Assembly (NCBI GenBank): GCA_002189035.1
Contig: NEEC01000050.1
Coordinates: forward strand, 1-59,519
From: Utricularia gibba
Lineage: Eukaryota; Plantae; Magnoliophyta
Direction: 5' to 3'
DNA length: 59,519 bases
Under the pieces are notes generated by a model, which had not been told where the DNA came from, ran no database searches, and saw only the letters and a list, made by a program, of their open reading frames with translations. This document shows positions 38,026-46,310 of the stretch, piece by piece. The number at the start of each line of letters is the position of its first letter. Within the stretch, counting starts at the first letter, position 1. The translations under genes were made by a program, and so were the position numbers.

Positions 38026-41000
38026 TTATTCAATGTTGATTGTCACAACCTTCTTTGCTTTTCCTCTCTGTGACTGCCCCCCACCGGAACCCTCCCTGAA
38101 AAGAGGATCCTGAAACCCACCCCATGCTGTAGGTGCTCCAAGCCGGCCACCTGCGTTCTCTGTCACCGATTGACTCACCATTGTAAATAAGAGCTTGTTT
38201 GATCGTATTACCTGACAGATTTACCTGAGTTTGTTTGAGAGCCAAAGGGGCTTGCGAAACCTGGGAAATATTTGCCGGTGCGCCCCTCCCAAGCTTGATC
38301 AAAGCCAACAAGTTCATCTGCCCACAACGAAGATGCATCTCATTATACAGTCGCTGGAAACTGATGCTTCACAAATCCATGATTCTTGGGGTTCATAGAC
38401 CAGCTGACCTTCATTTATGTTGTGAAGAGTCTGCATTGTGTCCACCTTACCACTGGAATCTAGCTTCCTGGTAACTGAATGCCCCTGTTGAAGGAGCAGT
38501 ATTACACCATTCGCTTCTTGCCTTCTTGACGTGAAACAAAAAGAAACAGAAGGAAGAAAAAGATAACATTCGTTTTGGCACCTTTTGGTGAATTCCCCTG
38601 GATATCTTATGTGTTGCTTCACCAGTTGTTCTGTTAGCCTCTCTGCTCTCCTCGAATGTCATCTGCTAAAATGTTCATGCACAGCGTTATAAATCTAATA
38701 GCACAGCTAATATGCAACAAAAAAAAAAAAAATTCAGATAAGTAGGAACATGCCCCGTCGTTCCCTGTGGTACGAGATGTTGTCGCTGTGTAATATGTTC
38801 CGTTGATACCACCATATGTCACCCTCTGGAAGCTCATGCTACGAGTCCTGGATTCCGCTACATCGACCTTGTTGTCATGCATGCTGTTTGGGGCTCTTCT
38901 GTGGTTGCTATCTTTAGCCCCAGGAACTGCCGCATCTGAAATCAGAGGAATAGTGAGGCTAATCCTGAATAGCTCAAAAACTTGTCAAGGTGCAGAGAAG
39001 GTTCAACTTACGATCTTCCTGATCATCTGGATGCTCAATAATTGGATGGCTGTCAGCAACTCCATCATTACCACCTCCATTTCCCTCGGTTCTGTCCGAA
39101 TCCTGTTCGTTATCCCCATCCATCTCTTCGATTACAGGCCCCTGCATCTTGTGCAAATGGCTATGGTTATCAGTGCGGAATATATCAGACCTGGAGGCAC
39201 GGCCAAAGGTAAAAGTATTTTTGGCTGCTTGATTTTGTTGGAGACTTGGTTGAACGTTGAGAGAATGTTGAAGTTTGTGGATATTGACTATTGTTTTTGG
39301 ATCGAAAAGAACTTTCCTTTATTTTCATAAAGCAAACAGGGATTTATATAGATGAGGAGAGTTGCCCGTTGGATCATATCAGGCCTAAAATATGACCGTT
39401 GCCTTTAGTCTGTAGATTAGTCCTCTTGTTCATCTACTGTGTAGCAGCCAGAATTTACTAGGACTTCTTTCATGGACTGGGCTTCAGATGCTTCTTCTTG
39501 GGCCAGTAGTTTGGAATGTTGAGGCCCAAGTATGATAAGGCCTTTTTCCCAATCTAATTGAGGGTTGCTTCTCATGGGAGGAACAGAGGTCGCGCGCCAT
39601 TCATCTTCGCGGGTTGAGACTTCCCGGATCTTCGTTGCTCCACCACTTGCTGACATTCCTCCCTGAGGGAGTAATGAAGATCCGGCTGTTGTCACAAGAG
39701 GATTTCTCCGAATTCCCAGCATTTCTCTGATTCTGTTGAAATTCCTTGGGAATAAGCATTTGGTGAGAATATCTGCAGGTTGCTCATCCGATGGTAAGTA
39801 CTCAAGTTTAATCAGTCCTTCCTTCACATAATCTCTGAGTATATGGTATTTAAGCTTGATGTGCTTGGTCCGACCGAACATCACAGGATTTTTTGCGATG
39901 CTAATGGCAGATTTGTTATCTATCTTGAGTATTATCGGTCTTGTAATTTGAATTTTCAGGTCATCGCATAATTTCACCAACCATTGCGCATGGTTGGCAG
40001 CAGCAGCTCCTGCGATGTATTCGGCTTCTGCCGATGATTGTGCAGTGACGGCTTGTTTCTTGCTGTTCCATGAAAATACCGCTGATCCTAAGTTGAATAG
40101 ATAGCCTGTGGTAGATTTACAATCTTGTTCGTCGCCAGCAAAGTCTGAATCAACAAATCCCTGCAAAATAGGGTTAGTACCTTTCTTGTAATATAAACCA
40201 AAGGAAGTTGTGGCCTTCAAATATTTCAGGATACGTGTTGCTATTTCCAGGTGTGTGTTGTGTGGCTGATGCATGAATCTGGCCAGAAATGATACGGCGA
40301 AGGTTATATCCGGTCTAGTAGCAGTTAAATACATCAGAGCGCCAATGAGTTTCTGGTAGTTATGAGAGTCAACTGGATGAGAATTAAGGTCAGATAATTT
40401 CTTTCTAACTTCTGGTGAGAAAGGAGTAGTAGATACTTTTGATGATTCCATGCTGTATTTTTTGAGTAGTTCCTCTGTATATCTACGTTGGTTCAAAAAT
40501 ATGAAGTCTTTATGTTGAATGATCTCCATTCCTAGGAAATAACGTGCATGTCCCAGATTGGTGAGTTCAAATCTTTGCTGCAATAGCTTCTGTAATTCAG
40601 AAATTCGTTCTTCACTGCTGCCTGTGATTAGAATGTCGTCTACGTATAAGGAGACAATAACTTTTCCTTGGATATCCTCAGATATGTATAATGTAGTATC
40701 ATTTTGACTTCTTGTATATCCCAGCTCTAGAAAGAAAGTGTCAATGGTAGTATACCATTCTTTGGGGGCCTGCTTGAGTCCGTATAAAGCTTTATTTAAT
40801 TTCAGTACATATTCTGGATTATCTCGGATGATGAAACCTGGAGGGGGTTCACATATATGTCTTCGCTTAACTCTCCATGCAGAAAGGCCGTTTTTATGTC
40901 CAGATGATGTAAATACCACTTGTTGCAGGCCGCAAGTGCAATAATCAGCTTAATGGTGTCTAATCTTGCCATCGGAGCGAAGGTTTCCAGGTAATCAATC

Positions 41001-44000
41001 CCTTCTTTCTGTAAATATCCCTTTACCACCAGTCTGGATTTTCTTTTGTTCAGAGTGCCATCAGGATTTAACTTGGGACGGAATATGAATTTTAGGTCCA
41101 GAGGTTTTTTCTGCTTCGGCTTAGGCACTGCTGTCCAAACGCCGTGTTTCTGGATGGAGTTGAATTCTTCGTCTATGGATTTCTTCCAATCTGGGTCAGC
41201 GAGAGCTTCCTGAACGCTTGCTGGTTCATAGGTGCTCAATGCCCTATCATAGATATCGTTGATTGGTGCATATCCTCGCACAGGTGAGCTGTCTTCATTT
41301 TGTTTCAGATCCATACATAGATGATGTGGGGTGTAAGGAACCCCTTCTTGTCCGTAATCTTCCAGGTAACTTTGCCTTTGAGGTGAGGGAATGAGTATAG
41401 GATTTCTTGCTGCTAGGTTGGGTCCTCGGTTTTGAGTTTCTTCATCTTCTCCTGATGAGTTTTCTTCTTCTGATGTATCGGTTGATGATAGCTCAGTGAT
41501 TTCCTTTGGATTTCTGATGCTGTTGATGAGGGTTTCATGACATTCTAGAGTTTGTTCAGGTATGTGCTCTGAGTCTGCATCCTCATATCTCATGTCTTCG
41601 ATAGTAGTGGCCATGCAACACGGTGCTTCAGTTTTAAAGCCTTGTATCTAATTCTCAATATCTATGCATATGTCTTTCAACACTGAACTTCTCGAAAGTA
41701 AAATCTCATTCAGATTTTATCTTAAGACTCGCGGGCCAGGAGTAATTCAGTTGATGAGGTCCTCCTCTTCAGGATTGTTGGGAGGAGCCTGTGGCATCGA
41801 AACCAGGAGGTATGAACACTACATCATCCCACATCGACACCGAACCATCCTTCATTCCTTGGATCATGTTCTCGAGTACATCAACCTGAATGTCTCCTTT
41901 TCTCAGTGCAGGATATGATTGTCTCTGATCACCAGCAGCTCTTAACAGAGACTTCTCTAGATCCTCCTTGCGGAAGAACACGGGCCTGTATCGCTTATCC
42001 TGAGTCCGTAATATTAACCTCTGTGACTGGAAAACCGGAACCCCACAGAAAGTGTCATCTGGAATTCCATCTTCTTGGCGTACCTTTAAGGCGTTCCTAA
42101 TCTGTGAAGCTTCGGGTAGCAACCTTAGAGCAACTCCATCAACCTTAAGCTGAAATACCTTGCATAAATCAACTGGAACAACTTGTGAGTCCAAACTCAT
42201 GGATGGATTAGAAGCCTTCATCTGATTGAGAAGTATCTCAGCATCCGCTTCACTGAAGCAAAACAATCCCAAACTTTTCCCTGTACTCTTCCCGAAACTA
42301 AAACAAATTCTCGCGCGGCATTGCTGAGAGCGAAAACCGGAATTCCGGAAAGCCTCTTCTCTATATCTTCTGCAGCCATGGTGCGTTTCTTTGTATTGAA
42401 AAAAGCATTTTCACTGGGCACAGCGTTAAGGACTTTGTTATCCTAGTACTACTCTCGCCCAAGCACGCTTAACTTCGGAGTTCTGATGGGATCCGGTGCA
42501 TTAGTGCTGGTATGATCGCACCCCTGGGAAGTCCTCGTGTTGCATCATGTCCTTGTTGAGGGAATAAATTCCATATATTTTCTGAATAAGAATGATTTTT
42601 GTCATGTGTTGTCGAGGAACTCCAGTTGTAAATTCTAGTCTCGTCTACTGTTACATCACGACTGAGTTCCACCTCATTTGTTCTTAGATTCAGTACCCTG
42701 TAGGCTTTACTTGTATTGCTATATCCCAGGAAAATTCCTTCATCAGATCTTTTGTCCCATTTTGATCTCTTCTCCTTTGGAATGTATATATAGCAGGGTG
42801 ATCCAAATACCTTCATGTGATCTAGGCTTGGAATTTTGTTGTACCATAGCTCATAAGGAGTTTTACAGTCTTTATTTCCTTTGGTTGGCAGGCGGTTCAA
42901 CAGATACACGGCTGTGTTGACTGCTTCGCCCCAGAATTCTAGAGGTAAGTGTTTTTGATAGAGTAGACACCGAGCCATATTGACTATTGTCCTGTTCTTT
43001 CGTTCACATATGCCGTTCTGCTCTGGCGTATATGGCGTTGTAAACTGGTGAGTAATACCATTTGTCTCACAAATGTGTCTCAGTTCAGTTGATTTGTACT
43101 CACCTCCGTTGTCTGACCGGAGTGTTAGAATCTTACTATTGCTTTGAGTTTCTGCAAGGACCTTGAAGACTTGGAAGTGGTGCAAAACCTCTGATTTATG
43201 CTTCAGGAGATAGATCCAGGTATACTTTGAATATTCGTCAATAAAGATCACGTAATATTTGTTGCCGGCTCGAGTAGGAGAGGCCATGGGCCCACAGACG
43301 TCACTGGTAACAACTTCCAATTTTTTCTGAGAATGAATGCTGGACTTAGGGAGTGGTGTTCGGCTCATCTTCCCTTGAAAGCATATTCTGCAGTGTTTTT
43401 CCTCAGGAATTATATTAGGAATCCCCTCTGCCAGGTTTCTCTTCTTCATGGATATAAGGGAGGCATAGTGATGGTGACCTAACCGTTGGTGCCAAATCTC
43501 AGATGATTCTAGGGACTTGAGGCAAATGTTGTAATCGATGGATGTAGCATTCGGAAGCAGTGGAAAGACCCTATCAGTCATAGCAACCGTAAGGAGTATA
43601 TTATCTTCTTCATCTAATATTTTGCACTCATTACTTTCCAGATGAACTTTCATCCCCTTTTCAACCAGCTGGCCAGTGCTTAGTAGATTGTGGTAGGCCT
43701 GGGGCACCAGATACACGTCTGTGATCTTGATTAATTTCTGGACAGTTTCAAGGCAAACTGTTCCTTGACCGATGACCTGTAAGTGATTTCCATCAGCAAT
43801 TTCGATTACTTTCCCAGTTAGCTCGATGAAGGTTGTGAATAGACTCTTGTCGTTGGTTATATGATGACTGCATCCGCTATCGATAAACCAGATGTCTTGT
43901 TTCCTTAGATCCACAAATGATGTGATTAGAGTTTTGCGGCGCAGAGAGTAAATATCAATCTTCTTCTTATTCATTTCAGCTGCGAGATTTACATCATTCA

Positions 44001-45528
44001 TAGCGCTAGTAAGTTTGTCCTTAGGATCTGCAGCCTTTCCTCCAATCTGATGGTATTTTTTCAGGGGACACACTTTGTCCACATGACCTTGGAGAGAACA
44101 GTACAGGCATTTGGCGTCAGGGCTCCAGAAACATTGTGTTGGTGAATGGCCTTTTCGCTTGCAGAATGGGCATGAATCTCCAGTACTTGGTTTCTCAATT
44201 TTTGCTTGAAAGATCACCGGTTCATTTGATGATTGAGAACCATAGCCTTTCTGATTTTCTGTTGCCTTGAAGGCAAGTTCCTGGCCTTCACCAAGTCCGA
44301 CTTCAACTTCGGATTCACTGAGTCTTTCTAGTAGTTTTCTGGAGGATATGGAGTGAATGCCTGTGACCCGCAAAGTAGTGACTACAGGGGCAAAGGACCG
44401 CGGTAGGGAACTGAGTATTTTTGATTTAATTCTTCTGTCTTCCAAGGGCTCTCCAAGGTCTGTAACTCAGTGACAATTTTGATTAGCGTTTCTGAAAAAT
44501 GAGAGATACTCATACCTGGTAAGAATTTCAGGTTGTCAAAGAGCTCCCATTGACGTTGAATGCGGCTCTCACGGGCTTCCGTATCCTCTCCGTAGAATTC
44601 CTCCAATTTTTTCCAGATGTCTTTGGGACTTTTCAGTAGCATAACACGGTTGAACACTTCTTCAGATAAGGCTTGATCCAGAGCATACTTAGCTTTCTTT
44701 ACTTGAGCATCTGTGAGTTTGAGACTTTCTGCTGTGGCTATTTCAGAGGAGTCTGGACGTACAGGATCCACCACAGACCATAAGTCGTTCATTTGCAGGT
44801 AACTTTCCATTCGTACTGCCCAAGAAGCGTAGCGCTGACCAGTGAAGATTGGAGGAGCTTGTTGGAGGGCTGCCATTCTGAGAGACTGCAATGATAAGAG
44901 GAGATGGGAGTCGGTGAAGTATCTTCACGTCGGGTTCACCATAAAAGTATTTTTGGCTGCTTGATTTTGTTGGAGACTTGGTTGAACGTTGAGAGAATGT
45001 TGAAGTTTGTGGATATTGACTATTGTTTTTGGATCGAAAAGAACTTTCCTTTATTTTCATAAAGCAAACAGGGATTTATATAGATGAGGAGAGTTGCCCG
45101 TTGGATCATATCAGGCCTAAAATATGACCGTTGCCTTTAGTCTGTAGATTAGTCCTCTTGTTCATCTACTGTGTAGCAGCCAGAATTTACTAGGACTTCT
45201 TTCATGGACTGGGCTTCAGATGCTTCTTCTTGGGCCAGTAGTTTGGAATGTTGAGGCCCAAGTATGATAAGGCCTTTTTCCCAATCTAATTGAGGGTTGC
45301 TTCTCATGGGAGGAACAGAGGTCGCGCGCCATTCATCTTCGCGGGTTGAGACTTCCCGGATCTTCGTTGCTCCACCACTTGCTGACAAAAGGGGCTGGTG
45401 AAGAAAGGGTCATCAAACGGAACCCTTCCACCAAAAGAATGCTGAAACATGCTCGTCCTGGAACCAAAATGATCAAATATGGTCCGCCCGCTCTTCGATG
45501 CATCGCCGATTTCTCTACGCCCTTGCAT
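38026..45528 (-). CDS. Myeloid leukemia factor (MLF)-like gene, interrupted in coding exon 1 by a Copia element
   Basis: Exon 1 reads MQGRRE..GGRVPFDDPFFTSPF (45528-45388) and resumes in frame after the element as GRASRSD..GPVIEEMD. Later exons: SFQRVTYGGINGTYYTAT, TFEESREA..HKISRGIH, GHSVTRKLDSSGKVDTMQTLHN, ending KVVTINIE*. Confidence 0.85.
39210..39655 (-). repeat. 3' LTR
   Basis: Direct repeat of 44942-45387 with no mismatch found by eye. Starts TGTCA and ends TTTTA on the minus strand. TATA-like TATATAAAT at 39350-39342. Confidence 0.96.
39417..41644 (-). CDS. Copia reverse transcriptase and RNase H (frameshift near 40850; ORF runs into the 3' LTR)
   Basis: EPASVQEAL, KSRLVVKGYLQKEGIDY, LDIKTAFLHG, LYGLKQAPKEW, SLYVDDILITG, FVDSDFAGD, SSAEAEY, IDNKSAI, ADILTK. 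Confidence 0.93.
39656..39664 (-). other. Polypurine tract
   Basis: AGGGAGGAA immediately upstream of the 3' LTR TG. Confidence 0.8.
41769..42379 (-). CDS. Intronless TIC22-like (plastid intermembrane-space import chaperone) copy captured inside the Copia element, lacking the transit peptide
   Basis: MAAEDIEKRLSGIPVFALSN..EFVLVSG, LGLFCFSEADAE, KVFQLKVDGVALRLLPE, GVPVFQS..LILR, YRPVFFRKEDLEKSL, GDIQV, WDDVVFIPPGFD. These match plant TIC22-like (TIC22-III type) proteins from memory. One base in the run at 42291-42293 joins the two ORFs into about 203 aa. Confidence 0.88.
42440..42546 (-). pseudogene. Rearranged 5S rRNA-derived sequence: nt 1-84 on minus (42523-42440) plus nt 94-117 on plus (42523-42546)
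   Basis: Minus strand GGGTGCGATCATACCAGCACTAATGCACCGGATCCCATCAGAACTCCGAAGTTAAGCGTGCTTGGGCGAGAGTAGTACTAGGAT and plus strand CCTGGGAAGTCCTCGTGTTGCATC both match the angiosperm 5S rRNA consensus as recalled. Confidence 0.95.
42469..44876 (-). CDS. Copia gag (UBN2-type, two CCHC knuckles), protease, GAG-pre-integrase and integrase (frameshift at 44446-44448)
   Basis: PPIFTGQRYASWAVRM, CPFCKRKGHSPTQC and CLYCSLQGHVDKVC, WFIDSGCSHH, WHQRLGH, SDVCGP..SDNGGEY..PEQNGICERKNRT, GIFLGY, SRDVTVDE. Confidence 0.93.
44924..44941 (-). other. Primer-binding site complementary to cytosolic tRNA-Trp
   Basis: Minus strand TGGTGAACCCGACGTGAA directly abuts the 5' LTR. The + strand TTCACGTCGGGTTCACCA equals the recalled 3' end of plant tRNA-Trp(CCA) plus CCA. 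Confidence 0.85.
44942..45387 (-). repeat. 5' LTR
   Basis: Direct repeat of 39210-39655, followed by the PBS. TATA-like motif at 45082-45074. Confidence 0.96.
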
Positions 45529-46310
45529 TTCTACTGTGCCTCCCATCAAACAACAGAACAATCCATGAATAAGCTTACCGATAACACAACAGACAAAACG
45601 GCACTTTCCATACACAAATGGGAACTGCGAGCTATTAAAACAACGAAACGCATTTATGACCAACAATTGACCGAGATCAACTCCTTCCAACGAAATTCGT
45701 GAAGCCAGAACATAGGCAAACGCCTTTCAACCCCCCAAAAAAACAAGCAATTGAGGCTTCAACCTAAACGAATGGAATAAAACTATTACATCAAGCAATT
45801 CTTGCAGTAAGAACCTGAAACCCCGGCAATCAAGCAATTGATCCAGGCCTTCCCTCACCCTTCCGCGCTCCAGAATCTGTGATTCAAAGCTTTTCTATTT
45901 ACTTCACGTAGGAGGATAAATATCAGGCTTACACGTGTCATCGCTACACCGTTTGTTATTTTAATCAATGGTGCTGGATCCTTCCAGTGTCTTCTTCCCT
46001 TCTCTCGCTTGCGGGAAGAATTAGCAATCGCCGGTTGGAAGGATGCCTTGGCCGGTTCGGCTACTGAAAATTGGCCGGTTTATTACAATTTTGAACGAAA
46101 TTTCAAATAAATACATAAGTTTTAGTTTTTTTTAAAAAAAATAGCATTGAATCCAACCCGGCGCCATGGTCCATGTCTCAATCTCAGAACCGACGGTCCG
46201 GTAGGAAGAAATTGTTTTATATATAATTTGGTGTAAGAGTTGGAAAAACCGCTGTGACGGAGTGTCTCAATTTCGAGCGAGAGATTCAGCCTCTGAACTT
46301 TTGGGAAGAA

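Follow-up and report, generated by a model that had tools for sequence, protein, structure and literature searches.

The window analysed here is a stretch of 59,519 nucleotides from the Lamiales plant Utricularia gibba (contig NEEC01000050.1), which carries a Copia-type long terminal repeat (LTR) retrotransposon on its minus strand (39210-45387). The two LTRs of this element are the same over 446 of 446 bases, which agrees with a sequence-only reading of this DNA that had called the element young, and a 5-bp target duplication, AAAGG, is found on either side of it. Between the integrase and reverse transcriptase (RT) regions of the element lies a stretch of foreign sequence, referred to below as the cargo, which is made up of a fragment of a host TIC22-like mRNA and of two pieces of 5S rRNA. 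Pfam analysis places Retrotran_gag_2, Pol_BBD, gag_pre-integrs, rve and SH3_retrovirus domains upstream of the cargo and RVT_2 downstream of it. A self-BLAST of the window returned the two LTRs only, and no further copies of the element.

For comparison, public contigs of the same plant (contigs of the runs X1, X5, X6 and X14, not raw reads) were aligned over positions 39700-45600. The normal form of this Copia family is represented by two long contigs of high depth, each from a different study: X5 record 14, which is 4737 nt in length, and X6 record 20, of 5153 nt. Both align up to 41613 and again from 42538, with 313 different letters between these points; the contigs of X14, a third and more divergent sample, stop at the same two positions. 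Since the family contigs hold 313 other letters here, the cargo replaces Copia sequence: 924 foreign bases (41614-42537) stand in place of 313 Copia bases, and this is a replacement rather than a clean insertion. The sequence-only reading had proposed that the cargo splits integrase cleanly from RT and that it is bounded by two copies of CCTTGT (41640-41645 and 42551-42556), such that deletion of the intervening 911 bp would fuse the two frames. The hexamer is indeed present at both positions, and the deletion does join the frames as ..NLFPQQGFKTEAPCCMATTIED.., but this fusion is a matter of arithmetic only, since 911 and the difference between 924 and 313 are congruent modulo three, and the residues FKTEAPCC are translated 3' untranslated region (UTR). 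The clean split is contradicted by the 313 letters of the family contigs and by the true limits given above. Nor can the hexamer serve as the microhomology of a template switch, for one copy belongs to the TIC22 3' UTR and its twin to the Copia integrase, and 74% of shuffled junction zones share a 6-mer; as a target duplication it was likewise rejected, being a chance match with its copies in different sources.

Contig depth for the normal family is 142 vs 8 in X5 and 23 vs ~2.5 in X6, which corresponds to ~10-20 near-identical copies, and on account of this number of near-identical copies the family is probably active. The intact polyprotein of the family was sought in the protein database, where the best matches within the length range were just 37% identical. 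X14, although labelled as the same organism, holds Copia pieces with 2-10% divergence and close to single-copy depth; its TIC22 exon differs at 11 of 290 letters, and the sample resembles a divergent lineage or subgenome in which this Copia family has had no recent burst.

The larger part of the cargo (835 nt) lies in the same sense as the Copia element. Its open reading frame (ORF) at 41769-42272 encodes a Tic22-family protein (Pfam Tic22, E 4e-56), the best protein matches of which are TIC22-like proteins of Lamiales at 72-74% identity; a TIC22-like protein of U. gibba itself was not found in the protein database, the best match (74%) coming from other Lamiales. The corresponding host gene is represented by X5 records 15 and 16 (depth 6-10, with a unique-flank depth of 8), which align with the window by exon alone, in the blocks 41610-41851, 41883-41968 and 42155-42444, and which have extra letters between these blocks and, past 41610 and 42444, sequence unlike the window. 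These two contigs are the intron-bearing host TIC22-like gene, from which the cargo differs over the aligned blocks at one of 618 letters and by one single-letter length change. The ortholog in Primulina has seven exons and six introns. Its exon limits coincide with the block limits of the host contigs, one of its exons, 31 nt in length, explains the unmatched interval 41852-41882, and all six of its introns are absent from the cargo, which is colinear with residues 47-264 of the Primulina protein. The exon-by-exon alignment and the missing introns therefore identify the TIC22 fragment as spliced and RNA-derived. It is cut at both ends, being without the first ~46 codons and the 5' UTR, and ending inside the 3' UTR; a poly(A) tail was looked for at 41610-41660, where no A-run was found, so that of the two features that the sequence-only reading had denied to the cargo, poly(A) and terminal inverted repeats, the first is indeed lacking.

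The remainder of the cargo is 5S rRNA. Rfam scores 5S rRNA at 69.6 bits on the minus strand over 42415-42523; this is the single 5S match in the window, and it is internal to the element. The covariance model over-extended at 42415-42439: the last 25 nt of the match, and the T-run next to them, are TIC22 coding sequence (..AFF..), and the reading of this T-run as a Pol III terminator was accordingly rejected. At the other end, 42523 corresponds to model position 1, the point beyond which genuine contigs of 5S rDNA go on into spacer. As the mature RNA begins at this very nucleotide, the end of the 5S piece points to run-off on an RNA template. Beyond this piece, which comprises nt 1-84 and has the same sense relative to the element RNA as the TIC22 fragment, a further 26 nt of 5S (nt ~92-117) lie in the opposite sense, and nt 85-91 are absent. 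Hence both sources named for the cargo were recovered, in the form of an Rfam 5S match and an intron-free TIC22-like sequence, whereas the 5S part is not a whole gene. A working 5S gene is colinear over ~120 nt, and its internal control region consists of box A, IE (intermediate element) and box C; a functional 5S rRNA gene was rejected as an explanation, given that just nt 1-84 are colinear while the rest is missing or inverted.

The junctions between these parts bear on how they were brought together. At each of the four, the neighbouring sources overlap, an overlap being defined as the stretch where both of them match (Table 1). Random joins would have a mean overlap of 0.67 nt, and the probability of a sum of at least 21 nt over four joins is ~4e-8 to 8e-8. 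The TIC22/5S junction is also found in a 630-nt contig of a 2020 run (X1 record 3), which follows the TIC22 part across the junction as far as 42508 and is then spliced to 42891 in the integrase. In addition, the 2016 run X6, which is without spliced joints and is DNA-like, contains the intron-free TIC22 form over several exon junctions. The share of words found per run is not diagnostic of the cargo, as it reaches ~0.72 for a run holding the separate parts only, and exon-junction words in RNA runs are also supplied by the parental mRNA.

Table 1. Positions of the Copia element, its cargo and the junctions between their parts (coordinates are those of the window).
Feature	Position	Strand	Basis
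Target-site duplication AAAGG, left copy	39205-39209		Sequence; single AAAGG in X1 empty-site contig
3' LTR of Copia element, 446 bp	39210-39655	-	446/446 identity with 44942-45387
Purine-rich, polypurine tract (PPT)-like tract adjoining 3' LTR	39656-39665	-	Read from sequence, putative
Copia pol, RT and RNase H side	39656-41613	-	Pfam RVT_2; family contigs align to 41613
Junction 4, 4-nt overlap Copia (RT side)/TIC22 3' UTR	41610-41613		Copia contigs stop at 41613, host-gene contigs begin at 41610 (X5 record 15; X14)
Spliced host TIC22-like mRNA fragment, ~codon 47 into 3' UTR	41610-42444	-	Host-gene contigs, Pfam, ortholog exons
Perfect 10-bp inverted repeat at ends of foreign stretch	arms 41613-41622 and 42536-42545		Sequence search
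Junction 3, 5-nt overlap TIC22/5S nt 80-84	42440-42444		X5 record 16 stops at 42444; X6 record 23 begins at 42440; X1 record 3 bridges
5S rRNA nt 1-84, element sense	42440-42523	-	Rfam; X6 record 23 with 0 mismatches
Junction 2, 3-nt overlap 5S/inverted 5S	42521-42523		Contig alignment ends
5S rRNA nt ~92-117, inverted relative to element, 26 nt	42521-42546	+	X6 record 23 plus-strand piece, 0 mismatches
Junction 1, 9-nt overlap inverted 5S/Copia (integrase side)	42538-42546		Contig alignment ends
Copia gag, protease, integrase side	42538-44941	-	Pfam domains, ORFs, family contigs
Primer binding site (PBS)-like TGG... tract adjoining 5' LTR	44928-44941	-	Read from sequence, putative
5' LTR, 446 bp	44942-45387	-	LTR comparison
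Target-site duplication AAAGG, right copy	45388-45392		Sequence; empty-site contig

The foreign stretch is furthermore bounded by a perfect inverted repeat of 10 bp, a length reached in 8 of 20000 shuffles, so that the denial of terminal inverted repeats did not hold. The repeat exists because the TIC22 3' UTR and the 3' end of 5S have a 10-mer in common. At the integrase-side junction the Copia RNA is complementary to this 10-mer, which may have tethered both RNAs at that site. A DNA transposon with terminal inverted repeats was considered and rejected, the arms being genuine TIC22 3' UTR and 5S sequence and 313 bp of the target being lost.

On this evidence we regard it as likely that the Copia copy is a chimeric cDNA, produced in one faulty round of reverse transcription and integrated by the element's own integrase. 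That serial template switching at microhomologies built the composite had already been suggested, and the four overlaps of 3-9 nt, the lost introns, the 313 bp replaced and a 5S piece that ends exactly where the RNA begins all speak for it. First-strand cDNA, which has the plus-strand polarity of the window, would have grown from left to right, beginning at the 3' end of the Copia RNA. On reaching 41613 the RT would have left this RNA for a co-packaged TIC22-like mRNA by way of the 4-nt overlap, and would have copied it from the 3' UTR towards its 5' end, before a jump through the 5-nt overlap onto 5S rRNA at nt 84 and a run-off at the 5S 5' end. The link back to the integrase side of Copia would have been made by the second 5S-derived patch and its 9-nt overlap. 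Because this 26-nt patch has the wrong sense, the last step cannot have been part of the first-strand pass: it probably occurred in plus-strand synthesis, or with 5S RNA in the role of splint or primer. Within the integrase region, the end of a plus-strand DNA with 9 nt of complementarity to 5S rRNA might have annealed to that RNA and copied it from ~nt 108 to nt 92, to be followed by a GGG/CCC transfer onto the stalled 3' end of the minus strand. In a variant of this scheme, the same 5S molecule would have been first template and then primer.

This latter idea can be taken further, although we consider it unlikely in its full form. A single co-packaged 5S rRNA would have had two roles, its first 84 nt being copied as template and the 26 nt at its 3' end, 9 of which are complementary to the Copia RNA, acting as splint or primer; it would thereby have rescued a chimeric cDNA that had come to a dead end, and the common 10-mer would have tethered the 5S and TIC22 RNAs. 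If true, the locus would be a caught-in-the-act model for the acquisition of 5S sequence by LTR elements, and hence for the origin of the Cassandra type.

Several points weigh against a chimeric cDNA from one faulty round. The 26-nt 5S piece runs antisense relative to the element, an orientation that a single copy-choice pass on sense RNAs cannot yield. None of the displayed contigs bridges three of the four junctions (41610-13, 42521-23 and 42538-46); for these the structure is taken from the window assembly and from one RNA contig, X1 record 3, in which cargo and integrase are linked by a splice with just 30 letters on its far side. The donor side of two junctions was set from alignment ends. 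Finally, the packaging of 5S rRNA and mRNA in plant Copia particles is presumed.

As to the state of the copy, the polyprotein frame passes from the integrase into the cargo and meets a stop at 42469, inside the 5S piece; consequently, no RT can come from the chimeric copy. It keeps its LTRs and its PBS-like and PPT-like tracts, and could move only with the help of intact relatives. There are also frame breaks near 44452, 42290 (in the TIC22 part) and 40842, each of them exactly at a homopolymer run whose length in public contigs differs by one letter, and these three breaks may be assembly (polishing) errors or private changes. The pol frame carries on through the PPT-like tract into the LTR, and the same 79-residue peptide is found in both LTRs (39417-39655 and 45149-45387).

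An empty site with a single AAAGG is present in a public X1 contig, and the occupied site is present in another run; the insertion is therefore polymorphic or heterozygous. With this empty allele, no differences in 446 LTR positions and 1/618 differences from the parent gene, the event is very recent. In X6 the family stands at a depth of 23, and the contigs with the intron-free cargo reach roughly one tenth of that value, 2.2-2.7; over the cargo in X5 the contigs shown are those of the host gene only. Neither further cargo-bearing copies nor a second flank were seen in the public contigs, although contigs cannot prove absence. Most simply, the chimeric copy is a primary product that shows no sign of having spread. 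Nor does anything point to the suggested later movement of the cassette with the element: with its cargo at roughly single-copy depth, the copy looks like a direct product of the event.

Single-copy depth would also be expected had the cargo been acquired after integration, in which case a normal copy would have broken between integrase and RT, lost 313 bp, and been patched by microhomology-mediated end joining with TIC22 and 5S cDNA or RNA as filler. Such a repair event accounts for a deletion combined with an insertion and for short overlaps at every junction, and the inverted patch is easier to obtain with both DNA strands of 5S rDNA at hand. Nevertheless, a main filler that is spliced and a 5S piece that terminates exactly at the RNA 5' end call for reverse transcription of two RNAs in any case. 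Filler DNA in plants is usually far shorter than 835 nt, and an mRNA-derived filler of this length would be unusual. Furthermore, the cargo lies in sense within the very element that supplies RT, and the identical LTRs leave no time for decay. We hold repair to be improbable for these reasons. A similarly low probability is given to an older chimeric lineage, in which the cassette would stem from an earlier cycle and the present copy would be a daughter mobilised in trans. Such mobilisation is possible, as both LTRs, the PBS-like and PPT-like tracts and gag are kept, and the family, with its ~10-20 near-identical copies, is probably active; secondary retroposition is also known for chimeras of this sort (PMC5131818). 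This history is countered by the X6 depth of the cargo (2.2-2.7 vs 23 for the family), by its distance of just 1/618 letters from the host gene, and by the lack of a second flank or copy in the contigs.

An error of assembly, by which a chimeric read or mis-join would have put 5S and TIC22 cDNA into the element, seems very improbable indeed. The three single-letter length differences in homopolymers do hint at imperfect polishing, and three junctions are unbridged by the contigs shown; against this, an independent contig of 2020 crosses the 5S/TIC22 junction and continues into the integrase, the intron-free form occurs in the DNA-like 2016 run X6, and ordered microhomologies at four junctions are unlike mis-joins.

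A chimeric cDNA made by template switching has well-described counterparts. In LTR-mediated retroposition (Tan et al. 2016), an internal retrocopy lies between both LTRs, part of the ORF is replaced and the mRNAs are partial (PMC5131818); the microsimilarity at switch points has a median of 6 bp, and in some cases the switches number more than two and several RNAs serve as parents (PMC5131818). In retroviruses, the Pol III RNAs that enter virions include 5S rRNA, as in MLV (murine leukaemia virus), non-homologous recombination is often bridged by short patches of host RNA, used as tertiary templates by virtue of fortuitous microhomology, and a 7SL patch in a retroviral recombinant has been cited (PMC4997597). 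The chimera fits LTR-mediated retroposition by template switching, for which there are examples in maize (Bs1), Drosophila, yeast (Ty1) and the patch repair of retroviruses. The sequence-only reading had not recognised this combination from any described family, but it falls within described kinds, given that several parental RNAs (PMC5131818) and repair by Pol III patches (PMC4997597) are both known.

Like the LTR retroposition chimeras of Drosophila, mosquito and vertebrates, maize Bs1 and the Ty1-mRNA chimeras, the copy described here keeps both LTRs, has part of its ORF replaced, and contains a partial, spliced mRNA without poly(A). Every switch point shows microsimilarity, and in that group, too, the switches may exceed two and the parental RNAs may exceed one. 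Unlike them, one parent is here a Pol III transcript, 5S rRNA, present as two short patches of which one is inverted. The gene captures described for LTR retrotransposons of plants are mostly old and eroded, whereas the present chimera is very young and apparently polymorphic. The resemblance to retroviral patch repair lies in short stretches of host RNA, typically of Pol III origin, that bridge non-homologous junctions through fortuitous microhomology; the differences are the setting in a plant Copia element (Pseudoviridae-type), the use of a 5S patch, and a packaging that is here presumed. Chimeric retrogenes of LINE-1 (U6 or 5S with mRNA or L1) similarly join a piece of mRNA head-to-tail with a small Pol III RNA through template jumps of the RT, but here there is no poly(A), no 7-20 bp duplication around the composite, and the whole is embedded in an LTR element, part of which it replaces. 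A LINE-mediated chimeric retrogene was rejected, considering the lack of an A-run at 41610-41660, the chance nature of the 6-mer match and the loss of 313 bp. The Cassandra terminal-repeat retrotransposon in miniature (TRIM) is likewise an LTR retroelement with 5S-derived sequence (PMC7215508), although Cassandra is without a coding domain and each of its LTRs has a near-complete 5S domain with Pol III promoter, in contrast to the truncated, split 5S that occurs once, internally, in a coding Copia element. A Cassandra-like or SINE-like 5S element was rejected, as the 5S match of the window is internal and truncated and the element encodes gag and pol.

What is uncommon here is a fresh case in a plant, with 5S rRNA as a patch and with one patch inverted; the kind itself is already known, and the chimera does not reveal a new mechanism. 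Its value is that of a fresh chimera with all four switch points intact, a natural record of an RT stitching cellular RNAs, one of them a Pol III transcript, into a mobile element. As the Copia family is apparently active, the template-switch process could be watched directly.

The insertion point of the element falls in an exon of a minus-strand gene, and in silico excision, leaving one AAAGG, gives back a continuous frame. From recognised motifs, rather than from a database match, we take this interrupted gene to be MLF-like; a Pfam scan of the host exon pieces flanking the Copia element returned no family. In the same region, X1 contains ten GT..AG joints with good splice consensus on the plus strand (39794-44064), at depths of 60-500, which represent multi-intron transcripts antisense to the Copia family. 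One such antisense transcript has its donor at 42510, inside the antisense 5S piece, and its acceptor at 42891.

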